Assembly (NCBI GenBank): GCA_047495785.1
Contig: JBLDXI010000004.1
Coordinates: forward strand, 620,001-684,000
DNA: 64,000 nucleotides
Reading direction: 5' to 3'
Origin: Lepidodermella squamata
Taxonomy: Eukaryota > Animalia > Gastrotricha
Shown piece by piece: positions 22,829-57,214 of this stretch (position 1 is its first letter; the number at the start of each line of letters is the position of its first letter). The position numbers and the translations under genes were made by a program. Under the pieces are notes generated by a model, which ran no database searches, had not been told where the DNA came from, and saw nothing but the letters and a program-made list of their open reading frames with translations.

Positions 22829-23205
22829 TTAATATGAAACGCAATCTTTCTGTTGCGAATCTAAGCGGATCCTATTTCTCCCGATGCTACAACCAGCCTC
22901 GATAAAGTCAAGCCGATCGTATTTTCGCCTGAAATAAAAACAAACTAAATACATGTAATTGCAACAACTATCAGGGCGAAACTTACACTGCGCTTGCAAG
23001 CTTCATAACACGTCGATCGAGTGAGCTGATCCAAAGCTTTGGTGACCATAGCTTCCACCCGCATCAGCTCATCATCAGTGAGGCTCGCCAATGCGGTGAG
23101 ATAATCATCGCGGCTCATCATGGTTCCACTATCGGGCCTAGATATAGTCCTAGCCATCAGAGATGCAGTAATGTCTACCAGAAAAAGTCTCGTTATTAAA
23201 CGCAT
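22829..23205 (-). pseudogene. Secreted 4-Cys family member A (exon 2 apparently frameshifted)
   Basis: Exon 1 23205-22987 (LASLTDDELMRVE...LDQLTRSTCYEACKRS) then GTAAGT; splicing to the TTTCAG acceptor at 22929 gives an early stop, while the family tail RLDFIEAGC lies in another frame. Confidence 0.65.
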
Positions 23206-23522
23206 GGCGCTAAATGCAGAAATTAAAATAGTGCATTCACAATGGCAGTGTACTTGTGTAATTACAAGAAAATTATCACACCTATTGACGTAGTGGTATG
23301 ATTGACGTCATGGGAAGCTTGCGAAATCAATTCCTACTTTTAACGCATTTAATTGATGCCAATGGCCAAGCAATTGACGTTGGCTGATTGACCTAGAAAC
23401 CTAGTTGAAGGACGCATCTTTGCTTTGGGTAATTGTCCACAAATTACGGTGGCGAATCAACTTCACTTAACTATACGGGTTGTTATATGACGAGGAAATA
23501 ATATTTTCTAGATCGAGATTTC

Positions 23523-24580
23523 CATAGAGATGATAGAGTGCTCACTCCCCACCAAAACCATACAACGCTATGGGGGCCATATGGCAGGGGATTAACTCAT
23601 TGTCCTGGAGTACAAAACTGAACTAATTACAAATCAATCGATCGCACAAATCGCTGGCGCCAGCGCTTCGATTATCGGTGGCAGGGTCGGGGTTTGGGTC
23701 ATCGCTAAACTGAGAGACGGCCGATTTTTTTATGCTAAATTTATTCAGGTAGCATTTTTAGAAGTGGACGATAGGCGACCGTAAAGTCAACGTCCCTTTT
23801 CGACCTTTTACCTTTGAAGCGGTCCACACCTGGATCTAAGGTGAAATTGAACGACCTTTTGAAGCCAAGTTATTCATCAGGTGGGGGCGATCATTTTGAC
23901 TCCTGATTTAGATCTGGAACCCCCATATTTTGAACGGTGGAAATTTTCGAATTAAAATCACTCTTAAAAAGAACTTTTTTGACTGTTTTCAGCAGTTTTT
24001 CACTGAGTAAACACTGTTGCGTAATTATTGAAAAAGAGTTTTTTTGCGCAAAGCTTATTTTTGAACATCCAATTTTGATGACTCATGGTCGTTCGCTCGC
24101 ACAAAATTACGATTTTTGGCTTAAAGAATTGCTTTTTAAGGGTGAATTCATTTTGAAAATTTGCAACGGTCAAAATATGGGGGTTCCAGATCTAAATCAG
24201 GTGTCAAAATAATCGCCCCCACCTGATGAATAACTTGGCTTCAAAAGGTCATTCAATTTCATCTTAGATCCAGGTGTGGACTGCTTCAAAGGTAAATGGT
24301 CGAAAAAGGACGTCGACTTCTCGGTCGCCTATCGAGCACTTCTACAAATCCTACCTGGATAAATTTGGTATCGAAAAATCGGCCGTCTCTCAGTTAAGCG
24401 ATGACCCAAACCCCGACCTGGTAACCGATAATCGAAGCGCTGGCGCCAGCGATTTATGTGACCGATCGATTTGTAATTAGTTCAGTTTTGTACTCCAGGA
24501 CAATGAGTTAATCCCCTGCCATATGGCCCCCATAGCGTTGTATGGTTTTGATGGGGAGTGAGCACTCTATCATCTCTATG
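23523..24580. mobile_element. Foldback MITE with ~410-bp TIRs and 8-bp TSD (P/Galileo-like)
   Basis: CATAGAGATG...CATCTCTATG; GAGATTTC duplicated at 23515-23522 and 24581-24588. Confidence 0.92.
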
Positions 24581-25566
24581 GAGATTTCTGATTAGCGGTC
24601 TGTGTTTTTGCACCTAATTTATTTGTCTAGTAGCTGCTCAAACTACCCATGGACATTTTCGAGCTAGCGCCATCCAAGCCACTGAATAATGCATGACATA
24701 TCTGAATAGCAGACGAGATTAACGAATAACGAGTGTGTCTTGACACATATTCAAACTCCTCGTTCCGGTGAAAATTATAGCTTCAGATTATAGGTTGCTA
24801 TGCCTAGTCCCTGACGCAATACGCGATATTTTTAATCGACTTCATGTATGCCGCTGCAAAATATGTGTATAACGTCGATAGCTGTTCAGCCCCTCCGAGG
24901 GTTGAACGTAAATTTTTGAACTTGAACTTCCTTGTTGTTGAACTTGAGCTTTTTCACGAAACATTTTTTACAGAATTTTCCTAATCTCATTTCAATTTCA
25001 GCTGAGCTTTCCAACGATATTATGTCACCTGGATGTATGGCTCATAAATAAATAAATAAATAAATAGCACATTAGGATCAGTTTCATTGGTGATATTAAA
25101 AATCATCCAGGTCGGAAAGGTTTTGACGAACTAGGGCCACACTCGTCACATCTGTCTAGCTTGATTAATGTCTTGCCCGGTTTCCTGATTGTTCATAATC
25201 AGGCCTTTCAAAATGTCTCCTATACCATGAAACCTTCATTATGGCAATCATCATAATTAGATATCAGCTATGAATTTCTTGTCACTCTCAAACCTATATT
25301 GGGCTGGAGTCTTAATATATTTTGTTTGAGGTGATTCCATTTGGAAATCGGACTCAACCCTAAATTTAGGGACCCTAGGCTGGGAAAATGTCCCAATAAA
25401 CACCTATAAATTATCTTCGATTGGACTTGTTTAACGATAAATAAGCGTGGCATTGTCGCACTTCTGAGAGGCGCAATAATAACAATTAACCTACTTAAGA
25501 TCAATTTAAACTACAGGCATTCCTCAAGGTATTTAAACCGAAATATGAGCAACTGATCCTTGAAAA

Positions 25567-25945
25567 ATGTTTTGCATGGTGATGATGAAGATTATGATTT
25601 TGGCTGCCCTGTTCGCCGAAGTTATTGGCAAACCCTCAGCCAGAATTCCTTCCGGTCAATTAGGCGATCGGAGTGTATTTCTGCTCGCTCTCAATCTGAT
25701 GAGCGAATCTCAGCTGGCCGAATTGGAGACTAAGGCTGTAGCAACGTTGGAAAGGCTGACCGCGCGTCAGTGTCGAGTGCTTTGCAAACGATCGGTAATG
25801 TGATGAAAATGTCAAAATTGCTTCTTTAATTTCATTTTCACAGGTCAAAGTAATGAGTTGCCTCGGTGAGAAACCAGCTCATCGGCAACATTTTATGAAA
25901 GCCAACTGTACCAACATTTCAGCGCCGAAGTTTCATCAAGGTTGA
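25567..25945 (+). CDS. Secreted 4-Cys family member B (109 aa; exons 25567-25794, 25844-25945)
   Basis: Signal peptide; 49-nt GT-AG intron; CRVLCKRS|VKVMSCLGEKPAHRQHFMKANC; TATTTAAA about 35 bp upstream. Confidence 0.85.
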
Positions 25946-26139
25946 ACGCATATTCCACTGACTCTCTTTTCAAGTATTCACTCCAATATCCAATACAACT
26001 CTCAATTCTTGTAACAGTATTGTGGAAGCTTCATTTCGCGTTATATTTTAATTTTTAATTGTTCAACACTAAAATGAGAGGAGGAACCCATCATTACGTT
26101 CGAAGCTTCACATAAAAAATACAGGAGTAAAAAATACAC

Positions 26140-26695
26140 ATAAAAAATGAGTTGGGTTTACGCGCTGAGAGATAAGCCGCAAGACGCTCAGACTTTGTTT
26201 TGGCGGGTGATAGCTAGCGTGGCCAAAGGAACCGGTAGTAGTGATTATCGCGTTGTCATTGAAGATGAAGATGGACGAATATTATCCGATGAGGTGGAAG
26301 TAGCTGAAAGATGGCGGTGGCACTTCATGGGTGTCGTTGCCGGAACCGAAATTCAGGCTAGTGAGCGGGGCGATACAGGAGATGCGAGGGATCAGGTGGG
26401 CTCAGGGCTCCTTGCCCTATAACCAGGAAGGATATAGAAGATGCAATCGCTAAAGAGAAGTTGGGCAAATCGCCATGGCGGGGACGAGATCAGCCTCGAA
26501 ATGCTAGATGCGCTAGGGAACTCTAAAAATGACTGGGTGGAAGCACTTATTAGTCGAATATGGGAGGAAAAAAGGGTTCCGAATGATTTCCTCAATTTGA
26601 TTTTAATACCCATTCCGAAGTAAGGCCATCGTAACAAATGTTCCAATTACAGAGACATCAGTCTAATCAGCATAGTAGCGAAATGCTACGCGCGA
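26140..26695 (+). pseudogene. Degenerate fragment of a LINE ORF2 related to the element at 28135-32809
   Basis: YALRDKPQDAQTLFW and IWEEKRVPNDFLNLILIPIPK closely match ORF2; contains stops and frameshifts. Confidence 0.9.
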
Positions 26696-26818
26696 TTTAT
26701 ATATTTATTAATTTATTCGTTTCCTCAAGTGAATGTTGCATGTGTATGCAATTCAGCTAGTCAGGCGCCTCACTGAGGAAATTAAGTATTTCTCCAATTT
26801 AGAGTCATCATTGATATA

Positions 26819-27375
26819 CCGTATTTCTCGAAAATATACCGCACCTCGAAAATATCCCTCACCCAGAATACAACCCTACAAAACTTATCGTTTGATCATA
26901 AATATACCGCACCTCGAAATTCTACCCCATGTTATTTAAAAAAATCAGAGCGCAGTATCAATTTACTATGAGAACAAAATAAGCACATCATCAGGCTGTT
27001 GCTTAGCTTGGGCTGGGCATAAGACTGTCAGTAAAAACTCTATTGAGGCATGAAGGGCGAAGCGCTGGATCATTTTGAATGTTATAGTCAATTCTTTACG
27101 ATGGTACTGATTTGATGGCTGATATCGTGTTCCGATCGCTTAGAACTAAAACTAACCGATAAAACATCAATAATTGCGCAAGATATCCTTTTTTCCACCT
27201 TTCAGTCCAATAAAACAAAAGCGCGTTGCTAGCAGTATTTATCATATTTCTGAAAAATTGTCGATGCCTCATAAATATACCGCACCTCGAAAATATCCCC
27301 CACCCCGATTACAACCCTATAAAATTTTTGGTTCATTCACAAATATACCCCGGTGTATATTTTCGAGAAATACGG
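26819..27375. mobile_element. pogo/Tc2-like MITE (TA TSD)
   Basis: TA-CCGTATTTCTCGAAAATATAC...GTATATTTTCGAGAAATACGG-TA; internal repeats of AAATATACCGCACCTCGAAA. Confidence 0.88.
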
Positions 27376-28386
27376 TAGTTTTAAAAAACGTTTTATTTCA
27401 AATCGTTTATAAAGCGACGCTTTTCCAAGGAGACACTTCCACTACTTTTCATTAAACTTTCGTAAGTAAGCGGTAAGCTGCAGTTGATAAGCAGAAACAT
27501 TCTTGCATGGCGAAAAGCCTCAAGGTCTCTGGGCCCAAGGTTATCCAATTACCGCCGCGCTGCTCCTCTTGCGGAATAAAATTTTCCCAATATCAGTTGG
27601 AATTCTGACAACAGCCATCACCGGAAAAAACAGGTGTTAGAATCGACCGACCAATGTATTTATTTCAGATTATATCCAGGCTGTTCCATTTGTCCTATAT
27701 TCTATTTGTTTTGCAAACTTTTTAAAACACAAGGGATCAACAATTTAAGAAGAAAATCGTCGCAATAATAACAGCTTCTAAAATGCCACTGTTCAAATTA
27801 AGAGGTCAACTAAGTGCATGTTTACGATGACTGAATTGTTCAGTCGGCAGCTTTGTTTGATTGAAAAGCTGACACTTGGTCTGTCGTGCAAATCTGTCAT
27901 GAGTGAAAATCATGAGTGGATTGAGTCGTTAATAAAAAGAACTCTTGATCAACATGACACGGTTACGGTTCAGGTTACCCAGCTCATCAATCTAATCATT
28001 GTGGATCTGTGTACAGTGTATTAAATTTACTACTTGGCGGCTATAAAACAAGGCAATTTGCTACCAAGGGTCATATCTCAAATTTTCAACTTATAATGAA
28101 GATCCTATACCCCGTTATTTTATTGGTTGCTTGTAGCATAGCATAGCATAGCATTTTCTTTATTTTATCTTTTCCTTGATCAACAATAACATAATAATAA
28201 CAATTGAGTTCAAGTATAGAAACGAAGAAACAAAAATGAGAAGGAAAAATGATAAAATAAAATTCACTCCGGTGTACCCAATTCGCCGGGCGTGATGTAA
28301 ATTTTGTTCACGCCAAGCGAACCGAGTGTCGGAGGAGGACCGGTAGCAAGCTACCTATCCTGATCGTCAACCGCAAAAACTCATCC

Positions 28387-31300
28387 TTACTCTGATATTT
28401 CAATTTCACCAAAATAACTATGAATTTTTTGTCTCCAAGTAGTTCTATCCTGGGCCAGGGCGTCGGCCTCCTCAAAATTGTTAATCCCTAATTTGTTCAA
28501 ATGTTTTTTGATGCAATCAATCCACCTTAATTTTGGTCGCCCTCGAGGTCTACTCCAAGTATCATCCGGCGGCTGCCAGTACCGCATCTGGCTTGCCAGC
28601 CTTACGGGGTCCATGCGAGCGACGTGCCCGTACCAGCGAAGTTGCCGCCTAGCAATTTTGAATGTAAATTGTTCTGAACCACACATATTTCTGATGACCT
28701 CATTGCGAATCCTGTCCCTAAGTGTTACTCCGCATATCTTACGCAAATAACGCATATAGCCTACATCGAGTCGCCTCGCATCCTCAGAAGTTAACGTCCA
28801 ACTTTCGCTGCCATGCATGATAGTCGCATCCACAACGCCCTTTAAACATTTCATTTTTTCTTTAGTCGGGACAGATCGATTGCCAAAAATATACTTACGC
28901 ATAGCGCCAAACGCTTTGTTGCCTTTTTCTAAACGAGTCCTTACATCAGCCTTACACCTGCCGTCAGACGTGATAACACTTCCCAAATATACGAATTCAT
29001 CAACTTCTTCAATGTACTGCCCGTAGATGGAAAAAGGTAAATGTAAATTGCAGTCATTTTTATTAACTCTCATGAATTTGGTTTTTGGAACATTAATTTT
29101 CAAGCCCAAGTGTCCACACGCCTCAACAAAAATATCTATAATCAATTGCATTTTCTCCGAATCTTGCGATAATAAAGCAGTATCGTCCGCGAATGCTAGT
29201 AACATCAGCCACTCATCGTCAGTTAGGGGGATACCTGTTTTTTCTAATTTAACTCGCTTGCAAACTACATTAAATACTGCTATGAATAACAGGGGCGACA
29301 ATGGGCAGCCTTGTCTCAGTCCCTTGGTCACCCGGAAGGGTTTCGCGCTAACGCCATTTACTCGCACAGTAGCAATGCTATCCCTGTATAATGCCTTAAT
29401 ATTATCTATAAGATCGCGAGAAACTCCTAGGTCTTCGAGCGCTTTCCAAACTTGATCGCGGTCGACAAAATCGTAAGCCTTTTCCAGGTCCATAAAAGTT
29501 ATAAAAATGCTCCTGTTAAATTCAATAATTTTCTCCATTATTTGCCTTAATATGAAGGTGCAGTCACCCGTGCCTTTGTTTTGCATAAAACCATGTTGAA
29601 ATTCTTCCAGTTTTATATTTATTTCATCGCGAAGCCGCTTTTCAAGAATTCGCGCGTAACATTTTGCAACGATACTAATTAGACTTATGCCGCGGTAATT
29701 ATTGCACTTATTTAAATCTCCTTTTTTTGGCACTGGGATCAGAATTAAATTCAGAAAATCATCAGGAACGCGTTTTTCAGCCCATATTTTATTGAAGAGA
29801 AACTCTAGCCATTCAATTTTCGAATTTTGTAGCGCATTAAGCATTTCTAATCTAATTTCATCGAGACCGGGTGATTTTCTTAATTTTTCCTTTGAAATTG
29901 CGAGCTGAATCTCGTCGCGTGTTATCGGTTTCATGAAGCGCGTTTCACATTTACTAGTAAATTCTAAATTTTCATTCAATTTATTTATTTCCTCAGCTAA
30001 TATTTCCACCCCATCTACAATTCCCATAAAATAACGTCTCCATCTGTCTGCTACTTGAATTTTGTCTGATAAACTCCTCCCATTTTCGTCTTCGATTACA
30101 ATTTTATAGTCGTGCTTGCCCGACCCTTTAGTTAGAGAAGCTATTAGATGCCAAAAGAACGACTGTGCTTCCTGAGGCTTATCTCTGAGCGCGTAGAACT
30201 TATTTCCAAGTTCCTTTTTGACTTCGTCCTTAGCCTGTCTTATAACCTTCTTTTCGCTGTTGCGCTCCTCAACGTAATCGTCCCACAGTTTATTCAAATC
30301 TGCGCTAGTAGCAACGCCGAGTTCATCTAACCGTTTCCTTTCCTTCGCGAATAGTTTAAATTTTCGCTTTTTCGCCGCTGCTTTTTTCCTAGTTTTATTG
30401 CCCCACCACCTAGTTCGCTTACCATTTTTCCTAACTCGTTTTTTCCCGCAGATTTTTGCACTTTCCGCCTCCAGCGTCTTCAGTTTTAGCCACACATCCT
30501 CAGCTGAAGTTGTCCTATCTACGTCACTTAATTTCTGGTCCATCACCTGCTTCAATTTATTAGAAAAAGTTGGCTGTTCTAGCCGCTCATGAGCCGTGCG
30601 CCATGCCTCTTCAACTATATCATTTTTGCGGTCCAGTTCGAATCTCATCCGTACACATAATAACAAATGATCAGGGCCCAAACAAGCATCTGCTATCGTT
30701 TCGCAGGCGAAAACGTTTTTTCTTAAGTATTGAGGTAGCAATAAATAGTCAATAAATGATCGTCGAGTTTCTCCAGTGGTTTTGTGGTGCCGAAAGAAAG
30801 TGTAACCACAATTTGGAAAGAAGGTATTTATGAAGCAGTAGCCATTTCGGCTGGCAAAATCGAACCACCGTTCACCTTTTTCGTTACCTGTTTGCGAAGC
30901 GTATTCACCTATCACCTCGCTTTCCTCCACACCCTTAGCTATTTCGCCATTCAAATCACCGCCAATAAGAATAATTTCATCGCTGTCTTTAGATCGCTCA
31001 AGCTCCTCTAGTTTACTCTCTACTTTTGCAATGAAAATATCCAACGCTTCTGTCCCAGATTCCGCAGGCGCATATATGTTCATTATTATAATTTTTTGGT
31101 TGCCAATTTTTAATTTCACAATTTGCAGTCGCTCATCGATCATCTCATCAACGGTAATTAAAATTTCGGGATTCTCCGCTGTAAAAGTTACTACTCCATC
31201 GCGGTTTCTCGCGGCGCTCGCATCGACCCCTGAATGTAAAACGCAAATACCATTCACCGATTTTTTTCCCTTACCTTTTTTGCGAAATTCTTGCCCAATC

Positions 31301-31638
31301 AAAACATCAATTTGGCGGTCTTTCATTTCTTGAGCAGCAGGAGCTGTTTTATCTTTTCCTGTGCTGAAATTTTGAGTACCCCAAGTAAATTCGAAAAATT
31401 CCTTATGATTCAAAGCACGATTTGATTTTCGATGTTTTCTATTTTTTCGCACCCTCTTTTTCTTAGCTAATTGATTTTGTTTCCGACCTGACTGCAAATT
31501 TAATTTTGAACATTTTTTCTCCTCATTTTGGTCATTATCAACAAAATTATTATCAACAAAATTATTATTAACAAAATTATTTACATCCGTACAATCAACA
31601 ATGTCATACCGATTGTAGTCGCAGTCAGGTCCGTTTCC
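28387..31638 (-). CDS. LINE ORF2: AP endonuclease plus reverse transcriptase
   Basis: GQE, NIYAP, GGDLN, IDY, DH endonuclease motifs; NYRGISL, DLEKAYD, GLRQGCPLSP, FADD; RTE-type C terminus WYGHVARM...RPRGRPKLRW; frame is open up to the ORF1 stop. Confidence 0.95.
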   Translation of the reverse strand, partial: GNGPDCDYNRYDIVDCTDVNNFVNNNFVDNNFVDNDQNEEKKCSKLNLQSGRKQNQLAKKKRVRKNRKHRKSNRALNHKEFFEFTWGTQNFSTGKDKTAPAAQEMKDRQIDVLIGQEFRKKGKGKKSVNGICVLHSGVDASAARNRDGVVTFTAENPEILITVDEMIDERLQIVKLKIGNQKIIIMNIYAPAESGTEALDIFIAKVESKLEELERSKDSDEIILIGGDLNGEIAKGVEESEVIGEYASQTGNEKGERWFDFASRNGYCFINTFFPNCGYTFFRHHKTTGETRRSFIDYLLLPQYLRKNVFACETIADACLGPDHLLLCVRMRFELDRKNDIVEEAWRTAHERLEQPTFSNKLKQVMDQKLSDVDRTTSAEDVWLKLKTLEAESAKICGKKRVRKNGKRTRWWGNKTRKKAAAKKRKFKLFAKERKRLDELGVATSADLNKLWDDYVEERNSEKKVIRQAKDEVKKELGNKFYALRDKPQEAQSFFWHLIASLTKGSGKHDYKIVIEDENGRSLSDKIQVADRWRRYFMGIVDGVEILAEEINKLNENLEFTSKCETRFMKPITRDEIQLAISKEKLRKSPGLDEIRLEMLNALQNSKIEWLEFLFNKIWAEKRVPDDFLNLILIPVPKKGDLNKCNNYRGISLISIVAKCYARILEKRLRDEINIKLEEFQHGFMQNKGTGDCTFILRQIMEKIIEFNRSIFITFMDLEKAYDFVDRDQVWKALEDLGVSRDLIDNIKALYRDSIATVRVNGVSAKPFRVTKGLRQGCPLSPLLFIAVFNVVCKRVKLEKTGIPLTDDEWLMLLAFADDTALLSQDSEKMQLIIDIFVEACGHLGLKINVPKTKFMRVNKNDCNLHLPFSIYGQYIEEVDEFVYLGSVITSDGRCKADVRTRLEKGNKAFGAMRKYIFGNRSVPTKEKMKCLKGVVDATIMHGSESWTLTSEDARRLDVGYMRYLRKICGVTLRDRIRNEVIRNMCGSEQFTFKIARRQLRWYGHVARMDPVRLASQMRYWQPPDDTWSRPRGRPKLRWIDCIKKHLNKLGINNFEEADALAQDRTTWRQKIHSYFGEIEISE

Positions 31639-32772
31639 TCAATGCATATGACGCCTGTTCATCCCTTCCAGTATGCCGCTTATCAATGAGATCAGGGCCG
31701 CCTGCTCGTTTCCTTGGCCATGAGGCCGATGACGATGTTGTTGATGTTGGTGCTGGTGCCGGCGTGAGCTTGATCCGTTCATGCGCTGATTGCAATCTCT
31801 TGCGTAATGACCCATGTTGAAACATTTGCGGCATTGCGTTTTCGCCAGATTTATCTTGCACGTGGCGATCAGATGGTCAGTTTCACCGCACTCATAACAA
31901 GCCCGGCTGTTGCCCTTATCTTTGTCTTTGTCTTTGACCTCGTTTTCGCTTTGACCTTCTTCTTTTGACCCAGTTTCCGGGACAACCGGTGGCCCGGTCG
32001 ACATTCGAGTGTTCCGACCCCGGCCCGCCCGGACATTGGATTCTTGCTGCTCTTCGCCCGTTTCCTCCTCGACGTTTTCGCATTTGTTTTCTGGCATCGG
32101 TACAATTTTTTTCTGAAATGATGAGTAACGCAAATGCGGTTCGTTGTTTTTTCGAATTTCGGCTCCGAATCGGGTCAAACCCTGGTTCGGGTGATCGGAT
32201 ATATAATCGTCACAGATTTTCATATATTCGAGCTCGTGTTTGACGCGATAGAAGTCGACTCGATAGCCCCACGATTTCAATTCTCGAATTGCTGCCGTGG
32301 TTTGTTGTTGATCAATGAATCGAACCCGGAGGAGCTTTCCTTCACGTCTGATGTCGACAACTGTGAAGCCGTCGTTTTTCAGCTGTTGTCTGACATGAAG
32401 TATGTCGTCTTCGTTCTTCGTGAAAACAGCCAATACATTTCTTGCGAGCTCCTTCTCTGTCAAGTGAATCCTGGTCTCGAGGGCTCCGATTCTCTTGTCG
32501 AGATCTTCGAAGCGCTCGCCATGGCTGCCCTCCGCTGGTTGTTCGGCACTCAGGCGTCGGTACAGTTTGAGTGCCTCGTCTTGGCTGCTCTTCAACATGT
32601 CTTCCGCCTCGTTCAGTTGACCAAGCAGCCGTAGATGTTTCGCTCGAACTGCTCCAAAGCCATCTCGAAGGCTGTCTCGGTTTACTCCCAAGCTTTCGAG
32701 CTGCTCGTTTGTAGCCAAATCGATTAGCCTGTCGATAAGGTTCAAAGCTTCGTCCGTTTCCAGTAAATACAT
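31639..32772 (-). CDS. LINE ORF1 (coiled coil, two CCHC knuckles)
   Basis: CYECGETDHLIATC and CRKCFNMGHYARDC; first ATG at 32772. Confidence 0.88.
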   Translation of the reverse strand: MYLLETDEALNLIDRLIDLATNEQLESLGVNRDSLRDGFGAVRAKHLRLLGQLNEAEDMLKSSQDEALKLYRRLSAEQPAEGSHGERFEDLDKRIGALETRIHLTEKELARNVLAVFTKNEDDILHVRQQLKNDGFTVVDIRREGKLLRVRFIDQQQTTAAIRELKSWGYRVDFYRVKHELEYMKICDDYISDHPNQGLTRFGAEIRKNNEPHLRYSSFQKKIVPMPENKCENVEEETGEEQQESNVRAGRGRNTRMSTGPPVVPETGSKEEGQSENEVKDKDKDKGNSRACYECGETDHLIATCKINLAKTQCRKCFNMGHYARDCNQRMNGSSSRRHQHQHQQHRHRPHGQGNEQAALISLISGILEGMNRRHMH

Positions 32773-34379
32773 TTCAGTAAAAATCTTAGACACAAATCAA
32801 ATTCGCAGATGGTTGCTTGTCTCGTAGCTATGTCCTCGTGCAGACCCGCAATAGCAAGGAACGGGCGATTCGGCGATACAATTTTCCACGCATTGAAGCA
32901 GTGTTCGAACCACGAAGAGGCTTGGCGATCTGCTCCGTCGCTCATCACGCCGTGCATCGGAAAGATCGAACACTTTCAATGGCCTGACGCTTCCACGGCG
33001 GCGCAGTTTGAACACCAACAGGGGCAGCTCCCTGTCATGTTTCTCCAGAATGAATTCGGCACTGTGAAAGAGCTTAATTGAACACTGGATACCTTTTTCA
33101 TTTCTTTATCGTTACTTAATCTGCAAGTGAGGATCAGCATATCTTTGAATAAACAATTTATTAGCTTTTAAAACACTTCGCTGCACACCATCAGTAGTAA
33201 GAATTATGGGGGATTCGTACCACTGTGTTCGAGAGCTCCAAAACAGGTCAAACAGCCAATAAAATCCAACAATCGAGCAGCCTGCGGAAAGAGGTCTTAC
33301 AGACTGTGTCAGGGAAACATCAAGACTTGTCCAGGCGCTACTCCATGCTACTTTATTGTGAGTGAATCGAACATTGCTATTTGGAATTCAAGGCCTTAAA
33401 TATTAGTGATACAAATCTAAGTCGAACACGCGATCACTTCCTAATTAGCTATCACATGAGAATCACAATATTGTTCTTAGTCGTTGCGTTGATGCCAGCC
33501 GCCAACCGGCACATCGTTACAGACTGAATTTTAGATTCAACCTGTTCAGTCTAAACTCCTTAATTTGATCCGATGATCTGAGTTCGTTGGTAGATCAGAG
33601 CTGGAATTATCAACCACATTATCTACAAATGTAAGAAGTACAAATCGAATGGAATGTTTTCGTGCACCGAGATATTTTTTGTCTAAACATTTTCCAATAG
33701 TTTTTATTGACACGTTGAATTGGTTAATCATCATTGTTTATATTTATATGTTTACAAACCGACAAATGACACAGTTGTGAAATTATTAATGTATCTTTTT
33801 CACGATGTAAACCACATGAGCCGGTGAGTAATATCATTAAACGCCCATAAACTTCAGATAGCGAGTTGAGAAGAATATTTCATAACTTCAGCAGCCAACA
33901 TCGTGCATGTCTGGGAAATAGTACCTGACCCGACCTGATACCTGAAATGATTCCGCGATACAGCTACGTTGTCGATCATATTTCTTCGAACATTTCCGGC
34001 GTACAATTGTTATAAGCCGTCCGATGCGATCACGCACGGTCATATTTTTATATCTATAGAGCTAATTGAATTATGAAACTTCTTTCGGCATTGGATCCTG
34101 CTCCTCCCTTCGGTCGTAGTAGGAGCGCCGGGTGAAACCCAGAACTTGAAATTATGGACAGGCTTTTCTTCAGCTTTCGTAAAGGTCTTCCCACAAACTC
34201 ATTTCTTTTTTCCCATGCGTATGCGCGTAAACACATACGCATGAGAAAAAAGCACACAGCCCCCGTTCACAAGCAGGATTTTTCCTGGCCGAAGAGGCCG
34301 CTGAAAAAAGGGCAGGCGGCACGTCGAATCGAACCCTTGCCGACATCGCACACATCGATAATTATATCGACGTGGCTAA

Positions 34380-36559: not shown

Positions 36560-36872
36560 TATAATAATTAATCATTTCTTTTTCAAAGCGAACTTTGAGG
36601 ACTAGAAGGGCATGCCGCTTACTCTAACCCTAGGTCTTAACGTAAGTGAGTAGGATGAACATTTCCGTAAGACGGATTTCGACTGGTGCAGTCTAGCTGA
36701 CACTCCCAGCCTACCAATTTTCTATTTTGTAAAGCGATGGATTGGTAAAACCACCGCGGGGCCGAGGGGGGACTCGATCCTGGTTCCGTCACTAGGACTT
36801 GAACCCAGTCCCGAGCGATATCCCCTCTGATACACAGTAGCTCAACGACCCAACTGAGCCACCGTGCCTCCC
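36560..36872 (-). mobile_element. tRNA-derived SINE
   Basis: A box TGGCTCAGTTGG, B box GGTTCAAGTCC, (TTA)n tail; second copy at 51262-52561. Confidence 0.85.
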
Positions 36873-39227: not shown

Positions 39228-39300
39228 GCTTTATTTGTTCAAAACCTTCATCATCAAAGCAATCATAACTCTTCGAAGAAATAAAAAACGAGGGAGATGT

Positions 39301-49059: not shown

Positions 49060-49460
49060 CATAGAGAAAAAAATGACCAGAGTAAGCACTCAAGCTAAAA
49101 TTTCTGAATCGTAATTGTTATTCAAAGTTGACTTTCTCAAAATCATTTTCCACTAAATTTTGCATGCCCATAGAACGCGAGCTGCTCTTTCACGTGGTAT
49201 AAGATTTGAGGTGGGCAACCCAACCGTTGTTAAGATGCAGAAACCTCGTTTTTACTATGGTTTCATCTATTTTCATGAGATCAAGACTGAGCAGCAATAG
49301 CCCACCACAAATCTTATACCACGTGAAAGAGCAGCTCGCGTTCTACAGGCATGCAAAATTTGGTGAAAAACGGTGATATCCGTTTTGAGAAAGCACTTCT
49401 ATAATAATGCAGATCAAAATTTTAGCTTGAGTGCTTACTCTGGTCATTTTTTTCTCTATG
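49060..49460. mobile_element. P-like foldback MITE (8-bp TSD CCCATAAT)
   Basis: CATAGAGAAAAAAATGACCAGAG... inverted at both ends; long imperfect arms. Confidence 0.92.
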
Positions 49461-51261
49461 CCCATAATTTAATTTTGCGTGGCGAATCATTTTGACCGCA
49501 TGGAATAAAAGAGCCGATAATCTGGGTCTAAAGTAGCTTCTTGAAATAAACATTTCAGGCTATACTCATTATCGCAATGATTATAAGGCATTCACAGCTT
49601 GTCCCGACAGTTATTCTTTTCGCAGCTTTCGTAGGCAATTCAATTTTTTTACTTAAACCTACTGGTAGAATCTTCCGTTTTATCCGCAGTTATACTAAAG
49701 AAATCCCAGAAAACTCAGATGGTAAGGGGCTGAGAAATTTGCTGTGCTTATCTGCGCGGCAATAAAAACATTAAACAATATTAAAGTTTTTGAGCGTATG
49801 GCTAACCAAGAAAAACATCGTCGCCGTAGTAACTAAGAAAAAATAGCCCTTTATTCGCCCTTGATAACTGCTTCCCGGGATAACTACACGGCCTCCAGCC
49901 CCGCCCTCATGCAGTTATCGAGGGAGTAGATCTTCAAAGATTAATGGTCATACACTCCGTATCCATGAGGGCTCTTCCTGATGTAAGCATTTTTTGAACT
50001 TGAATTTCCAAGCGTAAATGGCTTGTTATCCCTGGTACTGAGAATCTGACTAACTTCCTGATTGCTGAGAAACACTCACTCGACACTTGATCACGAATTA
50101 AAGGTACACGCACTCAGAGATCTAATTACAAGTCCCATTAAAATATAGAGCCTACTTTTGCGAAGATGATAATACTTCATCATCATCATCATTTGGTTTT
50201 ATTTATCGTCGTTTTGCGTTATTGCTGAGGCATACAAATAAAGTTTAACGACAGCGAGAGCGAGTAGTCAAGTAGAAGGGAGCAAGTGGTCGAGCGGTCC
50301 AAGCACCTCACTGGCGGCGAAGAACTGTAGGACGCCATTCACCGGCAATAACATCGATAAGCAATAATCGATAACCGCTACGAGATACAGGCTGTACGAT
50401 TACAAATTCGAAATCTACGAGACAGTTCACCCTAGAAACGCCATTTGGGCCCGCGGCATCTCTAGAGCTTATCACTTTCAGCCAACGACACAGCAATACT
50501 GTTTTCGATAGGCTGGGACAGGTTTCTGGCCACCAAGGCCGCGGCGAGAACTATAGGGATCACTAATGCAATAGTGCACACGTATGACTGTGAAAACATG
50601 CGAACCTAGAATGGCCTTATATGAAGACCGCCTGTCTCGAAATCACTAGGCTAGAATAATTAAATTTCCCTGTCTTCATCGACAAAATTATCACGAGAAT
50701 AACTAACATATCTAGCACTAAAACGAACGTTCTCATTCTCCAACTGGGCAAAATATGTGCAGGTATCTGATTAGGTTAACACTAGGCCTATTCCTCAAAT
50801 TTAAATGAAAGCTAGTTAATTTCCTTTCTAATTAGTTAAAATCTGGCACTTTGGAAATGTAGCGAATTTGTCGAAAATGGGAGTGTCCATTGTAGGCGGT
50901 GCTTGCAGGGTCGAAGTCCATTTTTATTTAATGCGTCGATGGTGCGGTGGTGAGGTGGTGAAGTTAGTTGTGGTAGTAGTTTTTGCAAATATTTTTCATT
51001 CAGCTCCATCTCTTAATTAATCAGCAAAAAAGTAACCGACCCCTCGACCGCACCACATAGCAAGCGAAGAAAAAACACAGGGATTCATCATTGAGGTCAC
51101 TATGAAAAACAACACCTACAATGCCCTAATTACTCATGATTTCTCCTCCTGATTTCCACCATGGAAAGGCTGAACCAGCGTGCGACTGTCAGGGGCCAGT
51201 CATTAAAACAATGAGAATTTATCCCACTGTTTTGGTAATTTTGAGGGTTTCGGAGCGTGTT

Positions 51262-52561
51262 TTATAATAATAATAATAATTTATGTTTCAAAGCGAGCTT
51301 TGAGGACTAGAAGGGCATGCCACTCACTCTAGCCGAATGTCTTATCGTCAGGGCTGCAAAACATGCAGGATCGCACGGTAAAAATTTCCCGCCAAACCCG
51401 CTCGCTCGCTTTATTTAATTCAAACATCAGCCCATTACCTAGCGTCCATTTCTCAAGACTAAATCTTTTAACGTCTTCTACTTCGTCAAAGCACGCAACT
51501 GCAAATTTACCACGAGAAATCGCGTTTTAAATGGTTTAACTAACGATTTTATGGGGATATTTTACTAAAATTTATAGTTGCTCATGTTAATGTAAATCCG
51601 TAATTCTTTAATGCATCTCTTAAGTCTGAGTTTTCATGGTCGAATCGGCGCGCGACCTTCACGCGAATATAACTTAGAAAGTCGAAATGAAGTTTTGAAC
51701 GGTGCGGAATATCAAAACACAAATTAGATATTCTGATTCAGCGTTAAACGTTAGGTAATTGTACCTTTCAAAATGATGAAGAAATGCGGAGGAAAAGTTT
51801 ATCAGAGTGAGCGCGCGCGCTCAAAAACAGTGCGTGTGCAGCGCTCTCCTGCGCTCTGCCAAGTGTAAGCGAGAGAGACTGTGCGGGCGCGTCAGCAAAC
51901 ACAAACCGCACACTCACACACACGCGCGCGCGCGCAAACAAGCGAAATTCTGATTTATTTCCCCCTATTTATTCCCCAATTTTAATCATAGCCGCACGCA
52001 AATTTGCAGTCTAGCTCAACTTTTTACGCTGAATCCAAATCTCTGATTTGTTTTTTGAAATTCCGCACCGTCGTAAACTCGAGTTTTTCATATAACTTGC
52101 ACTAATTTCAAATGTTTAGAATTTCCTCGGAATTTTTAGTTTCTATGAAATGTCACTTAAAATAATACCGCGCAAGTTCAGTTTCCTATGAGGATATTAA
52201 TTTCCAAGTATTTCCCGCGGATGATTTTCCACATTTCCCGGTGATTTGTTATACTTTTCAAGGCGAAATTTCCCCAAAATTCCCTGCTGCGCGGCAAAAT
52301 TTCCCCCGCCATTGTGCGCCATTTTTGCATGTTTTGCGGCCCTGCTTATCTTAAGTGAGTGAGATTTCCGTATGACTGGATTCGACTGGATTCGACTAGC
52401 TGACACTTCCAGCCTCCCAATTTTCTATTTTGTAACGCGATGGATTGGTAAAACCACCGCGGGGCCGAGGGGGAACTCGATCTTGGCTACGTCACTAGGA
52501 CTGGAACCCAGTCCCGAGCGCCGAACGATATCCCCTCAGATACACAGTAGCTCAGCGACCA
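51262..52561 (-). mobile_element. Second SINE copy, 5' truncated and split by a hAT MITE
   Basis: 52353-52561 and 51285-51348 match 36580-36852. Confidence 0.85.
51349..52344. mobile_element. hAT-like MITE (8-bp TSD CTTATCGT/CTTATCTT)
   Basis: CAGGGCTGCAAAACATGCA...TGCATGTTTTGCGGCCCTG. Confidence 0.88.
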
Positions 52562-52847
52562 AGTCATTTTGGCAAATATAGCATTCGCTCACATTCTCCG
52601 CACTCGATTAGATCATGCCGACTCGGCTCCGCCTCGCCAGCATGCCCGCATCTCATGCTACGAATCTCAGATATAAATGAAACACTCGTATACATCATAT
52701 ATCATACAAATATAGCAACACAAATGTCCATCCCTGGCAGTTCAGGGACCCTGGGCTGAACAGTTTACAATTGGAAAATTATCCTCACTTTCCTATCTCC
52801 AAATTTATTTCCGAATTCAACCAAAATAATGGAATCAAAGAGCATCT

Positions 52848-53204
52848 TTATGATATGTAGTTCGGAATTGGATTGTAGCCACATCGATTCTGGATATATT
52901 TTGGAAGTTTTTCAGGAGATCGTCTAAGACAGCGCCGAACGTATTTCTGGTGAGAGTGAAATCGTTAACTATAGAACTTGATTTGATTATCGTAGCAACT
53001 TACGTCGTGTATGCACAACTTTTCGCACTGAGTTGAGGTAACCTTGTCAAGTCCACGAAATGTTAACGCTTCTAGTTCGGCTAGTTCGGCATCGTTGAGA
53101 AATCGCAGCCCATTGAGCATCGCACCAAGCTCGGCGTTGAATCGATCAGGGGCGGTGAGACACGGAGCTGCCATGGCAATGAAAATAATTACGAAGATTT
53201 GCAT
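52848..53204 (-). CDS. Secreted 4-Cys family member C (99 aa; exons 53204-53004, 52946-52848)
   Basis: Signal peptide; 57-nt intron; CEKLCIHD|KYVRRCLRRSPEKLPKYIQNRC; TATAAA upstream, AATAAA downstream. Confidence 0.88.
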
Positions 53205-53733
53205 TTTACAGTGATTAATTGATTTCTTACTGAATCCTATCAGCTTGGCGCTTTATAACCTTGCTTCATGCACCGTCAGCTTTGCATTCAGTACAGCGGG
53301 GTTGATGTTTTTGTCACGCTGTCCCTTGATCAACAAACAATTAGTCTCCTCGTAGTTTGATTGAGAGCGATTAAGAGACATGGGCGATTTGGATGCATTG
53401 CGAAGGTGTGTCCTCGACTTGCGGTCGACTAAAAATGAATATCCAAAAAAGGCAAGTTGACACGCAGGTTTCAGGCATTTAGATTCGAATGGATAATTTC
53501 ATTAAACAAAAACTCATACATCGACATTGAGGTCCGCTGTTTGATGAACGAAAAAATCTAGTTCGAGTAAAAGACTGTTCGTTTGATCCATGCCAACCTT
53601 ACATTTTACTTGATTAAAAAAGTTGAGGTTCGAGTAACGCCTAACTTGAGACGTGACATCGCTAAGAAAAAAGGCAGCTAATTAGCTCGGATAAAAACTG
53701 GAGTGAACGATTTGCCAAATTTCAAATCCCAGT

Positions 53734-54034
53734 CATTGTGTTTGAGGTTGTAAGTTGAAAAAAATCTGCACGCTGATTGGTCAGTTGGCTCGTATCCATG
53801 ACTCCGCCTTGCTACTTGATCGTGCGATCCATAAAATGTTTGCAAAAAATATCTTTTTATGAATGGTTTTACGCATTTGTTGGAAACGCGTGCTACGATA
53901 CGGCCTTCATAAAAATAATAAAAGCCACAAATTATATAGATCGCACGATCAAGTAGCAAGGCGGAGTCATGGATACGAGCCAACTGACCAATCAGCGTGC
54001 AGATTTTTTTCAACTTACAACCTCAAACACAATG
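53734..54034. mobile_element. MITE with ~96-bp perfect TIR and 3-bp AGT TSD
   Basis: AGT-CATTGTGTTTGAGG...CCTCAAACACAATG-AGT. Confidence 0.9.
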
Positions 54035-54946
54035 AGTGCCCAAAACTTCTTTTGTCCGTCTACTAATTCCGTAATTAGCTCAAATTGTGCATGCAATTCG
54101 CTGACTCTATAGTTTTGCTTGGAGCTCATAAGATACTTTTTCCAAGTGTATCTTCTCTTTTGATGGCATCGCTTCAGCGTAGGACAACTTTGAACTTGAA
54201 ACTTGATCTTTCATATGGAAAATCCGTTTCATGCATTGAGTTTCATGGGACGCCATATCAATCAGATGTTTTGAATCTGAATCGCAATGAATCTGAATGT
54301 TTTGAATCGCGCAAACAGCTCACAGGCGGATTTTTTCCATTATGGCATCTAAATTAATCTAAATCTAAGGAAGAAAATAAATCAACAGAGGCCTAAAATA
54401 TTGCCTTGTGGTAGCGTTCCTTCAACTTGTTTATTGGAGCTTCTCGTTTAGGATCGCCTTCGTCATCGCCATCTTGAACAAATCGTCGAGATGCCATCAA
54501 AGAAAGAAAGAAAGTAAGATTCATGAATTGGGCAGCAATTCGCCATTTCGACGGCGCATACGATCTTAAGAAAGAAAAGAATCGCTTTCCCCTATAACCT
54601 AAAACACACGTTTTACCATCATCGCGCGAGTTCCTTCAAAACGCATGTTCCCATACGACCTGCGTCAAATCCGCGCTAGAGGATGCGCTTTGCCCTAGAT
54701 GAACGTGCGTTACCCTAAAACATGTATATTTGTCAGCAAACAAATCTGCGAATTCTATGCAGCTTGTAATTTAGACAACTCAAACATTTGACCAGGCTCA
54801 TCTGACATTTTATTAGCACACTGGCATCAACATTCAACTTGAACTTGAATTGAGGCTGAAGCTAAGGACGTTAATAAGTTAGCTTAGAAGTTGGTAATAA
54901 AACTATGATTCGAATAGGCGTTTTACCATGTGTATAACACCATCTC

Positions 54947-55240
54947 TCATCGGTGCTTGTTAAGAGCAAGCTGAAGAAAACCAATTTGTCTGCGACAGCT
55001 GAGTTTGATGAAAGCTAGCCGTTCTTCAACAGAGCGCTGGGAAAGGCATTTCAGCATGCGGTGCGTATTTCTCCTGAGACAATGTACACATAGCGTCGAT
55101 GCCATCTCGTTGATATCTTTGGTTTCGGCCCCATAGTAGCGTTTCAGATCTGAAATGGTAGAATTTGCTGATAACGTTGAGTGAATCACTGCGACAATGA
55201 GGACGATAATAGCAAGTGCTTGGCTCGAAGCAAAGGCCAT
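54947..55240 (-). CDS. Intronless divergent secreted 4-Cys family member E (97 aa)
   Basis: Strong signal peptide; C-x2-C-x10-C-x16-C with CL...RLAFIKLSC, similar to CL...RLEFIAMMC of member D. Confidence 0.72.
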   Translation of the reverse strand: MAFASSQALAIIVLIVAVIHSTLSANSTISDLKRYYGAETKDINEMASTLCVHCLRRNTHRMLKCLSQRSVEERLAFIKLSCRRQIGFLQLALNKHR

Positions 55241-56841
55241 CGATATGATTTTGCTCTAAGTATAATTTAGAAGTGTTTTTCGCCCATGTAGAAAAGTGAA
55301 GCCTTTTAATGCCCTCTGACAGTTAGATTCTTACGCCGACAGAAATCAACATTGACAGTTGTCCGCATTTCAAGAACACCGCTGTACAGATTCAGCACGT
55401 GTGTGTCAGAGCTGTGGCAGCTACTTCAAGTATGTCGTCCGCAGCTCAGTTCAAAAATTGTCTCTAGATAATGTACAGACCATTTGATATAATTGGAGAC
55501 TGACATCAGATTAGCTTGGACCCTAATTTTCCGCCAGCCTCAAAAATTATATAACGCTTGGAATCGCGTGTGGTCTGCTGCAGCTAGGGCCTATCCATCA
55601 GCTCGGCACATGGTGGCTATTTTGTAATTCCCAGAATCGTGCAGGTTATGTAGTTAACAGAAAAACCCCCGGAATACGTCTGCGGGAAAAAACGATGCAC
55701 GCTTTACCCTTATATGTCATTGGACGCAACGGGTGGATAATTTAGAAATTCATCAACATGACGACCATATGATATTTACGGTGAGCTGGTCAGCTGCCGT
55801 GACACAGACAGAATATCTTGCACTCGAGAACAACAATTCGACTTCAAACAGGTGATAGTACTAAGCAAACTTCGAATGTGTTTACATCAGTGAATAATAC
55901 GCCTGAATGCAAAGTTTGACCAGTGTAGAAAGTAGGAAGACGTCAAAGGTACGGATATCGGCACCTTTGGTGACAAATCCACAGGGGGGACCCTTACACT
56001 CCGCGAAAAAAATTTCAATTTCCCAAATTTGCATTCTCATCACTTAGTCAACTTTTGCTAATCAGTATGTTATAAACTAAAAACTGAAACATCGTTTTTC
56101 AGAGCGCATCGGGGTTAAGAAGACGTGGCCCCTGATTGGGTCCATGATTACATTATGCCGAGTCTTTAATGAAGCGGACTATGGGAGTGGCATAATTGCC
56201 CTTGTTTCTTCTAACTGTCACGTTCTTTTGTGAATTTCAAAAGTAGAAAGTAGCTTTGTCGTTACCAACGTAATTTGATTTTTGTGAAGAGACGATGTTG
56301 TCAACAAATCAGTGTATTACTACCGTGATTATTTATACAAATCAAGTGTCTACACGCGTACTAAATGGCTGCTGGGTGAACAGGGGGAATTTTTTTGAGT
56401 CTGTTTAGATGGTAATTATTTGTCTAGGTGATTTTGATTTGTTTAATATTTGATTCGTTTAATAGGTGAAATCTGAGCGCCGTGATGGACACTGGCAGTC
56501 AATAAGTCTAATTAGCAGTCAGTTTGATGATTTTTTTGTCTGACATTAAGTTTTATATCTATGGAACCCAATTAATTTCAAATGTTGTTAACTGGGTTTT
56601 CGATTACCTCACATTGCGCTCTGCAAGATATGGTCTGAATGTCAATTTAGAATATTTGCAACAAACAGACAATTTTGATTTGAATTGTAATTGAATTGAT
56701 TGATTGTAATTGATATTAGAGTGATTTCAAATTGGATTGACACACTGCGAACGTCGCTTTGAGGTATTTATTCTGGTAAGTAATGTCAGATAATTTCATT
56801 GTACTTGAACTAAAAAAGCATTTGTAGTTTCTCGGACAAAT

Positions 56842-57214
56842 ATGAATACTAGGTTGCCATTTCTCCTAGTTGCTTTCGCAACATTGCTTCAACCGATTGC
56901 AACAGCTCGCCTTGATAAGAAAGTGCGCTTAATCTTCGAAGCACTGAAAGGTATCAGCAATGAGCAGGTCGCGAAGTTGTTATCTAAAATGCACCACACT
57001 CTGGACGGTTTGACAAAATCGCATTGTCTCAGGGCCTGCAATCACATGGTAAGTTATATTCAAATGAAACGAGTAAATTTTCAAAAAATCAACTATTTTT
57101 CCGCAGCTACAGTTACGCGCATGTTTACATATCGTTGTAGAAAATCGGCTGGAATTTATAGCAATGATGTGCTTAAATAACTCTGCTGTCTTTAATGGAC
57201 TTCCAGTGAAGTGA
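56842..57214 (+). CDS. Secreted 4-Cys family member D (104 aa; exons 56842-57048, 57107-57214)
   Basis: Signal peptide; 58-nt intron; CLRACNHM|LQLRACLHIVVENRLEFIAMMC; AATAAA near 57282. Confidence 0.88.

Follow-up and report, generated by a model that had tools for sequence, protein, structure and literature searches.

The genes presented in this work probably constitute a taxonomically restricted multigene family of Lepidodermella squamata, whose members encode small and likely secreted proteins with four cysteines and three helices. The family comprises about 30-33 genes in about five clusters, including a sister group called here 'E-type'; its canonical members share one gene structure, evolve under purifying selection and have no detectable relatives, and their sequences and models suggest that they might be exported, disulfide-linked and active outside the cell. 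To our knowledge, Gastrotricha are represented by one published genome. With its clean conserved gene structure, its confident predicted fold and its lack of detected relatives, the family gives a concrete entry point to gastrotrich extracellular biology, be it defence, adhesion or signaling. Most newly sequenced phyla yield lineage-restricted secreted families of a comparable kind; the finding, solid as it is, is not exceptional until the function or the site of expression is known.

The window, i.e. the whole 64-kb stretch of DNA that was analysed, contains three intact two-exon genes (B, C and D). A preliminary description had drawn attention to them, and to a fourth copy (A), through four short open reading frames (from 23205 and 53204 on the reverse strand, from 25567 and 56842 on the forward strand), all of which were located at these positions. 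Gene B (25567..25945, forward strand, 109 aa) is made of exons 25567-25794 and 25844-25945, stop codon included, around a 49-nt intron (25795-25843). Gene C (52848..53204, reverse strand, 99 aa) has exons 53204-53004 and 52946-52848 (with stop) and a 57-nt intron (53003-52947), and gene D (56842..57214, forward strand, 104 aa) has exons 56842-57048 and 57107-57214 (with stop) and a 58-nt intron (57049-57106). Reading of the DNA, scripted splicing and a pattern scan reproduced the two-exon splicing and the identical cysteine spacing that had been proposed for the three genes. The introns start with GTAAGT or GTAATG, end with AG and lie in phase 0 exactly three codons past the second cysteine (Cys2), after which the frame stays open until the stop. 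All three spliced products carry C-x3-C-x8-C-x15-C and have in common the tail R-x2-[FY]-[IM]-x3-C. When the window was scanned for the strict architecture, B, C and D were the only matches; neither the reversed window sequence nor any of 100 block-wise shuffles gave one. Moreover, the exon-1 and exon-2 HMMs matched B (E=1.8e-18 and 6.1e-12), C (E=4.6e-18 and 1.4e-10) and D (E=1.1e-15 and 7.6e-9). A TATTTAAA box lies about 38 nt 5' of the ATG of B, and C has TATAAA at -53 and AATAAA 38 nt past its stop. We consider B, C and D confirmed as real, unannotated two-exon genes, with splicing predicted from conservation; the contig sets compared with them were of DNA type and contained no exon-exon joints. 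ORF-based views miss whole families through such short second exons.

Two broken family copies had also been reported in the window and were found again, with some revision of their lesions. A is a pseudogene of the 'A' subfamily (22829..23205, reverse strand), delimited by its ORF, the exon HMMs and DNA alignment with paralogs. Its exon 1 (23205-22987; exon-1 HMM E=6.8e-15) is intact from the signal-like N-terminus through C-x3-C and the three following codons; a 58-nt intron (22986-22929, GTAAGT..CAG) and an exon-2 remnant (22928-22829) follow, and the exon-2 HMM matches only the C-terminal half of the latter (E=0.16). Against its two closest paralogs, C1:4639054 and C1:4642257, exon 2 has a 26-nt deletion that takes out the Cys3 codon and shifts the frame. 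The frame shift attributed to A is therefore real, but it lies in an exon-2 deletion that also removes Cys3 and leaves exon 1 untouched. F (32809..33081, forward strand; tblastn and frame reading) had been described as a copy disrupted by a LINE. Indeed, the 5' end of a LINE retrotransposon (28387..32793, reverse strand), in which ORF1, a zinc knuckle (zf-CCHC, E=3.6e-6), and ORF2, a reverse transcriptase (RVT_1, E=9.9e-35), are both open, adjoins F; F itself, however, is only a truncated N-terminal remnant of a 'long form'. It matches the long forms of contig C1 over 32809-33018 (tblastn, E=2e-13 to 4e-10), retains their N-terminal extension with two extra cysteines and has a premature stop at its end; no C-x3-C core, exon 2 or other 3' part of F was found. 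As for the 35 kb of transposons in which the copies were said to lie, one full LINE and reverse transcriptase fragments were confirmed. Overall, four old subfamilies are represented in the window by one member each (intact B, C and D, and the broken A), along with one E-type gene and the long-form remnant F, all dispersed amid retrotransposons.

The genes of the window are no local oddity: they form one outpost of a family whose members, about 33 in number, are spread over about five clusters. We searched 121.2 Mb of genome sequence in 151 contigs, the L. squamata assembly being described as 122 Mb in 157 contigs (PMC11660948). The HSP70 of this genome shows no more than 75-83% identity to any library protein, and the host is most likely a gastrotrich and not an insect. 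The exon-1 profile gave 29 matches genome-wide (E from 1e-29 to 0.4), clustered on contigs C4, C1 and C20, and the family clusters were placed on C4 (two), C1, C20 (two) and C24. About 25 canonical copies look intact and have the same intron position, a set made of 22 strict two-exon models, two members with x7 in place of x8 and one member without the intron. Intron position and phase are common to all 22 strict models (49-60 nt, phase 0, three codons past Cys2). Without splicing, exon 2 would be out of reach: in 13 of the 22 models the intron length is not divisible by 3, and seven of the nine others contain in-frame stops. The product of exon 1 has a hydrophobic N-terminus resembling a signal peptide, followed by a variable linker and then by a long acidic helix ([FL]-L-x-D-A-E-L-A-E-L-E...L-D-x-L-T-x3-C-x3-C), and exon 2 encodes x5-C-L-x2-K-P-E-x-R-x2-F-I-x3-C and then a short tail; five 'long forms' have an additional N-terminal stretch bearing two more cysteines. 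The four cysteines are invariant across 24 aligned members of 15-85% identity, in agreement with the earlier suggestion that the cysteine scaffold and the intron position are kept while other residues vary. TATA-like boxes are found 40-56 nt 5' of many family ATGs, and AATAAA past many stops. The clusters, which include pseudogenes, show a tandem or segmental arrangement genome-wide; A, F and the E-type copy in L036 are broken, and the L015 copy may be broken as well.

Family members are constrained coding genes under purifying selection, since dN/dS is 0.18-0.66, below 1 in each of the 18 paralog pairs with more than 45% identity, and since pN is lower than pS in the exon-2 core alone (0.155 vs 0.469, pooled). 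For example, B gives a dN/dS of 0.50 with C4:1021121 (85% identical) and of 0.18 with C1:4669082 (69% identical), and gene C gives 0.37 with C1:4601330 and 0.27 with C20:1962915. The tree contains three well-supported subfamilies with one window gene each (B, C and D), each of them also present in other clusters; D and C1:4671289, for instance, form a clade with support of 100/97 (dN/dS 0.24). Chromosomal location shows no clustering on this tree. The preliminary description had spoken of birth-death turnover. The tree shows old subfamilies common to several clusters, and the strong divergence among the window copies reflects subfamilies that were already separate before the clusters spread, not fast local turnover. 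A paralog dN/dS comparison had also been suggested; given that all measurable pairs are below 1, there is no sign of diversifying selection at this coarse level. Such values, together with old subfamilies, suit arms-race effectors no better than they suit conserved ligands or structural products.

Every member has an N-terminal 10-residue hydropathy maximum of 2.3-3.3, which agrees with the small proteins with a signal-peptide-like N-terminus described before; judged by this hydropathy, the family proteins are probably secreted. AlphaFold2 (AF2) modelling of the intronless canonical member gave a mean pLDDT of 84, above 90 across the core, from an input alignment in which the exon-1 rows had their four final residues misplaced and exon 2 was given in separate fragments. 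The model has helices at residues 25-33, 37-62, 66-74 and 77-87, and for the conserved core of about 55 aa it predicts a compact bundle of three helices. In this model the long helix terminates with Cys1 and Cys2, the short middle one contains Cys3, and Cys4 comes directly after the last one. This helix geometry suggests a pairing Cys1-Cys3 and Cys2-Cys4, and two such disulfides would lock the bundle. Among 24 mature proteins, 18 are cationic amphipathic helical mini-proteins (pI 8.4-9.8). Five members are strongly acidic (pI 4.2-4.6) and do not fit a simple cationic-antimicrobial reading.

Database searches detected no relative. Pfam gave no match at E up to 10, nor at E up to 1 in a second search, and no relative was found among PDB sequences, in two word-based searches of 5.8 billion clustered proteins, or in an exhaustive HMM search of 1.84 billion protein representatives with the exon-1 profile only. 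Five matches from the latter search were discarded as tandem-repeat artefacts. The structural check proposed with the initial finding argues against a known family as well: with the three-helix bundle model as query, Foldseek returned nothing below E=1 in the PDB, an exhaustive structural scan gave only generic three-helix bundles (Z up to 5.2) and a search of the Atlas reached a TM of 0.51. In the searchable literature, we found no paper describing gastrotrich secreted proteins. The libraries searched contain next to no gastrotrich proteomes, and the orphan status may mean no more than that the phylum is unsampled.

The spacing had been said to differ from that of insect OBP, CSP, saposin and insulin, and the alignment and the Pfam searches support this. 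Insulins have a B chain with C-x11-C followed by an A chain with CC-x3-C-x8-C, the C-peptide between them being removed at dibasic sites. The gastrotrich proteins resemble insulin/relaxin in being helical and, as predicted, disulfide-linked, and their C-x3-C-x8-C sub-pattern equals the A-chain spacing. Unlike insulins, with their six cysteines including a CC pair, they have four core cysteines, no CC pair, no upstream C-x11-C and no Pfam match to PF00049, and this family was rejected; no spacer flanked by a conserved dibasic pair separates the cysteine-bearing segments, Cys2 and Cys3 being only 7-8 residues apart. Saposin-like proteins (NK-lysin, caenopores, amoebapores) recall the predicted features of the family, being all-helical, disulfide-linked bundles that are secreted and in many cases cationic, but they have six cysteines (three disulfides) and four or five helices; with four cysteines, three core helices plus a short N-terminal one and no SapB_1 or SapB_2 match, the family does not belong there. 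In CS-alpha/alpha toxins (kappa-hefutoxin) and small Tim proteins, C-x3-C on one helix face makes two disulfides to its partners, as predicted here. In those hairpins one antiparallel helix supplies the partners as a second C-x3-C, whereas the second pair here is C-x15-C (C-x16-C in the E-type), with Cys3 and Cys4 15 residues apart on different elements of the modelled three-helix bundle; moreover, small Tims have no signal peptide. Insect OBP, with a six-cysteine pattern, and CSP, with C-x6-C-x18-C-x2-C, were rejected by spacing and by the lack of a PBP_GOBP or OS-D match in the Pfam searches. Euplotes pheromones (Er-1 and relatives) and Aplysia attractin resemble the proteins as predicted here in being small, secreted from a signal-peptide precursor, formed of two or three disulfide-locked helices and multigene, with a conserved cysteine scaffold and a variable surface. 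They differ by six cysteines (three disulfides), mature lengths of 38-58 aa, other spacings and other host phyla, and neither sequence nor significant structural match (Foldseek, structural scan) to the gastrotrich family was obtained. The best structural matches were bundles of the protein A/albumin-binding-domain type (model residues 35-90, Z 4-5.2, rmsd 2-5 A), which are surface domains of bacteria and lack disulfides; any short helical bundle is expected to reach such a low Z, and nothing points to common descent.

The proteins would act extracellularly as stable binding modules, and host defence, antimicrobial or anti-predator, is in our tentative opinion the single most likely role, because of the cationic amphipathic character of most mature proteins. 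Saposin-like proteins, which are often antimicrobial, offer a functional analogy for it. It is a rather speculative view that the family represents a gastrotrich-specific class of disulfide-locked three-helix mini-proteins that make up a new family of effectors outside the cell, in host defence or as ligands of lineage-specific signaling. That the proteins are extracellular signaling ligands (hormone-, growth-factor- or pheromone-like), the old subfamilies being distinct ligands for cognate receptors, seems unlikely. Old, well-separated subfamilies each kept in several clusters under purifying selection, the differences in charge among them, some being acidic, and the predicted disulfide-locked helical bundle, similar in general form to other helical peptide signals, would agree with ligands; about 30 paralogs are nevertheless many for a hormone family, and there are no dibasic processing sites around a defined mature peptide. 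As reproduction of L. squamata is mainly parthenogenetic, a mating pheromone is less likely. It is quite improbable that gland or epidermal cells make these proteins in bulk for secretion or as structural material, for instance for adhesive-tube secretion, cuticle and scales, or egg shell: the proteins are small, compact and globular and show none of the repeats, low-complexity stretches or cross-linking motifs that characterise adhesives and cuticle proteins, even if they are mostly basic, come in tandem clusters and have TATA-box promoters with very short 5' leaders, typical of highly expressed terminal-differentiation genes.

Two further explanations concern the nature of the family itself. 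Small helical disulfide proteins diverge fast, and the coincidence with the insulin A-chain spacing might point to highly diverged members of a characterised family (insulin/relaxin-like, saposin-like, twin C-x3-C hairpins, etc.) missed by sequence methods. With only four cysteines, no CC pair, no B-chain or C-peptide layout, no sequence match in Pfam or the PDB and, in structural searches, only generic similarity at the Z and TM values given above and nothing from Foldseek against the PDB below E=1, we hold this to be very improbable. The surroundings are rich in transposons and two of the six window copies are broken, as would be the case for chance ORFs, decaying pseudogenes or transposon passengers; this explanation is hardly credible for some 25 copies that keep their frames, intron phase and all four cysteines despite dS up to about 1.4, that have dN/dS below 1 in every pair, exon 2 alone included, and whose architecture arose in 0/100 shuffles. 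A functional, lineage-restricted family of extracellular proteins remains our preferred reading.

The sister E-type genes number 7-8 in the genome, have a dN/dS of about 0.3 and lie inside the same clusters as the canonical genes. Gene E of the window (54947..55240, reverse strand, 97 aa, from the ORF list) is intact. It had been introduced as an intronless relative, and it is intronless, but its cysteine spacing is that of the E-type, C-x2-C-x10-C-x16-C, with a hydrophobic C-terminal helix in addition, and not the canonical one. The canonical exon-2 HMM matches E at E=0.002, hhalign aligns the E-type and canonical cores with all four cysteines (P=0.0011), and the E-type AF2 model has the same helix and cysteine order as the canonical model. 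Every main cluster contains E-type genes, in two cases tail-to-tail with a canonical one, and it might be speculated that the E-type and canonical proteins work as partners.

Three genes of the window, B, C and D, share one architecture. Reading the DNA and splicing it by script gives B at 25567-25794 and 25844-25945 on the forward strand (49-nt intron, 109 aa), C at 53204-53004 and 52946-52848 on the reverse strand (57-nt intron, 99 aa) and D at 56842-57048 and 57107-57214 on the forward strand (58-nt intron, 104 aa). The four short ORFs that had been reported are all present, and the claim of a phase-0 GT donor with introns of 49-58 nt holds in the sequence: the introns begin with GTAATG or GTAAGT, end in AG, and lie in phase 0 exactly three codons past the second cysteine. 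The predicted spliced products carry the identical spacing C-x3-C-x8-C-x15-C (hereafter canonical) and the R-x2-[FY]-[IM]-x3-C tail, as proposed. A strict scan for this architecture, requiring a Met-started ORF of at least 45 aa with C-x3-C-x3 followed by GT, and then a 35-260-nt intron to an AG and x5-C-x15-C ahead of a stop, matched B, C and D and nothing else in the 64-kb window. Since the same scan gave zero matches in 100 block shuffles and in the reversed window sequence, the observation is real and not due to chance.

These genes are not confined to the window. A profile built from four exon 1 translations and searched against the organism's own genome (121.2 Mb in 151 contigs) found 29 matching places: in the window itself (640-680 kb of its contig, C4), at 1.019-1.021 Mb of the same contig, in a large cluster at 4.60-4.71 Mb of contig C1, and in two places on contig C20 (1.95-1.97 and 2.21-2.23 Mb). 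Script modelling recovered this two-exon structure in 22 genes, the intron always in phase 0 three codons past Cys2 and 49-60 nt long, except for one of 236 nt. Two further members (loci L018 and L020) have x7 in place of x8, another, at L027:1360-1689, has the canonical spacing and no intron, and five long forms bear about 45 extra amino acids at the N-terminus with two additional cysteines. The rough core consensus reads [FL]-L-x-D-A-E-L-A-E-L-E-A-x-A-x2-A-L-D-x-L-T-x3-C-x3-C and continues with x8-C-L-x2-K-P-E-x-R-x2-F-I-x3-C. At two other loci on C1 (L017 at 4194606 and L029 at 4653799), exon-1-like ORFs encode the acidic helix and the first cysteine, and neither a C-x3-C donor nor an exon 2 could be recognised; each may be a decayed copy or a diverged member of different structure. 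The intronless member of L027 is directly adjoined by an ankyrin-repeat ORF (L027:1761-2279, reverse strand).

On the sequence evidence, the family members are constrained coding genes. Intron length is not a multiple of 3 in 13 of the 22 two-exon models and in-frame stops occur in 7 of the remaining 9, so that exon 2 can be reached by splicing only. Nei-Gojobori dN/dS, whose computation among paralogs had been suggested, was 0.18-0.66 in every one of the 18 pairs more than 45% identical, where dS reached ~1.4, and in the exon-2 core alone (22 codons; 12 non-independent pairs) pooled pN was 0.155 vs a pS of 0.469. A TATA-like box 40-56 nt upstream of the ATG and an AATAAA downstream of the stop are common among the genes. 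All members begin with a hydrophobic stretch (10-residue hydropathy maximum 2.3-3.3), and the proteins are probably secreted. In the assembly's own DNA reads, depth was uniform over the genes (~36-40) and no variants were found in them; comparison of the window with this set and two other contig sets, none of the three recorded as RNA, revealed no joints. One of the others, from a different organism, shares only a high-copy repeat at 53.7-54.0 kb, and the last shares nothing. This short repeat, at window positions 53640-54110, reaches a word depth of ~8000 in the genome's own run, vs ~36 in its flanks, and no other part of 52.7-57.4 kb occurs in the set of the different organism.

The preliminary description had presented the window as a hidden cluster with birth-death turnover, a picture that the genome-wide data do not bear out. 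A maximum-likelihood tree of 24 members places B, C and D in three separate, strongly supported subfamilies (99/98, 99/99 and 100/97), each of which also contains genes of C1 and C20; the window carries one of each. The nearest relative of B is C4:1021121 (85% identity), that of C is C1:4601330 (62%) and that of D is C1:4671289 (58%). Because the subfamilies are common to several clusters and the tree shows no grouping by chromosomal location, they predate the dispersal of the clusters. The window copies are more aptly seen as an outpost of an older, constrained family of ~33 genes. The divergent A-B pair has a duplicate on the window's contig at a distance of 375 kb (L015 and L005, C4:1.0195-1.0215 Mb); there the B copy has 85% identity and a dS of 0.16, and the A-like copy retains Cys3, with no obvious signal peptide upstream.

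The window also holds damaged copies. Copy A, which resembles C1:4639054 and C1:4642257, retains exon 1 and the intron, and the frameshift reported for it stems from exon 2, where 26 nt present in both close paralogs are deleted. The codon of Cys3 is lost and the frame shifted by this deletion; A is a pseudogene. Copy F had been described as disrupted by a LINE, which holds in part: a remnant at 32809-33081 (forward strand) resembles the long forms in their N-terminal extension alone (E down to 2e-13) and then meets a stop, and an apparently intact LINE at 28387-32793 (reverse strand), whose ORF1 (zinc knuckle, 384 aa) and ORF2 (reverse transcriptase, 1036 aa) are both open, ends at most ~16 nt from the first matching codon. 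A search for the 3' part of F at 27.9-28.4 kb and 47.6-47.8 kb was negative, both stretches having only chance-level similarity and no cysteine. Further reverse transcriptase fragments lie at 58962-60165 on the forward strand.

Gene E (55240-54947, reverse strand) is intronless as claimed, and its spacing is C-x2-C-x10-C-x16-C, followed by a hydrophobic C-terminal helix. The canonical exon-2 HMM matched it in the window at E=0.002, and core-to-core comparison with hhalign gave P=0.0011, with the four cysteines, C-L and R-x3-I-x3-C all aligned. With moderate confidence, we regard E as a diverged sister type within the same superfamily. Seven relatives of E were found in the genome, one with a stop codon, some within the clusters of C1 and C20 and others grouped separately on contig C24; their dN/dS is ~0.3 where measurable. 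No contig encoding E was found on record, in a search that may omit records of the genome from which the window comes. At C1:4.612 Mb (L018/L039) and C1:4.623 Mb (L020/L037), an x7 canonical gene lies tail-to-tail with an E-type gene a few hundred bp away, and this duplicated two-gene unit may reflect a functional link of the types.

The absence of a known family, in line with the preliminary comparison with insect OBP, CSP, saposin and insulin spacings, agrees with all our searches, for which the queries of the canonical type were exon 1, the intronless L027 member and two members with open introns. Pfam gave no family match near any cut-off, the rows for DUF3586 (E=0.13), CM2, Translin and BET lying far below the cut-offs, as noise. 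Among 5.8 billion clustered proteins, word-based searches with the exon-1 and E-type alignments found no match at E up to 1; PDB sequences gave nothing at E up to 10, and the best score of an ESM Atlas feature search with L027 (0.76) was noise. When 1.84 billion representatives were searched exhaustively with an HMM of 23 exon-1 rows, five matches came up, all of them long tandem-repeat or LRR proteins and hence artefacts. The preliminary interpretation finds partial support: the family is real and, by a profile of exon 1 only and in protein libraries not known to include other gastrotrich proteomes, novel. The insect frame of reference does not apply. A literature search found no paper on secreted Cys-rich families in gastrotrichs; a public L. 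squamata transcriptome is named in PMC11660948, which also describes a 2024 assembly of 122 Mb in 157 contigs.

The predicted fold is not where the novelty lies. AlphaFold2, given the mature intronless member and a mixed alignment of exon-1 and exon-2 fragments with a small misplacement, returned a model with a mean pLDDT of 84 (core above 90) and helices at residues 25-33, 37-62, 66-74 and 77-87. The long helix ends with Cys1 and Cys2, Cys3 sits within the short third helix and Cys4 lies past the last one, a geometry that would suit disulfide pairing of Cys1 with Cys3 and Cys2 with Cys4. Helices and cysteines follow one another in the same order in the E-type model (pLDDT 75, core ~90), which has an additional C-terminal helix. 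Foldseek found no match below E=1 in the PDB, an exhaustive structural scan gave generic three-helix bundles only (Z up to 5.2), and an Atlas shape search reached a TM of 0.51. The models thus point to an ordinary small three-helix bundle, and the novelty resides in the family and its putative disulfide framework.

As to function, 18 of 24 proteins are basic (pI 8.4-9.8) and 5 strongly acidic, in most cases the helix ahead of Cys1 is acidic and the segment from Cys3 to Cys4 basic, and the family mixes old conserved subfamilies with some pseudogenes. In our reading, these small proteins, predicted to be rigid, would be extracellular binding modules, and a role of such modules in host defence is the likeliest of three alternatives, which we put forward tentatively. 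The same proteins might instead be signalling ligands, which seems unlikely to us, or bulk secretory or structural products, which we consider rather improbable. We judge the finding on the family sound and new.

Two observations concern other parts of the DNA. The genome's intronless HSP70 has a best library identity of 75-83%, its matches coming from molluscs, arthropods, tardigrades and flatworms, which would suggest an animal of a sparsely sampled lineage. At window positions 14289-16925 there are at least 4 tandem 659-bp units, which show 100% identity across the 300 nt compared and which TRF missed because the period exceeds 500; this array could be a satellite, or an amplification or assembly artefact.
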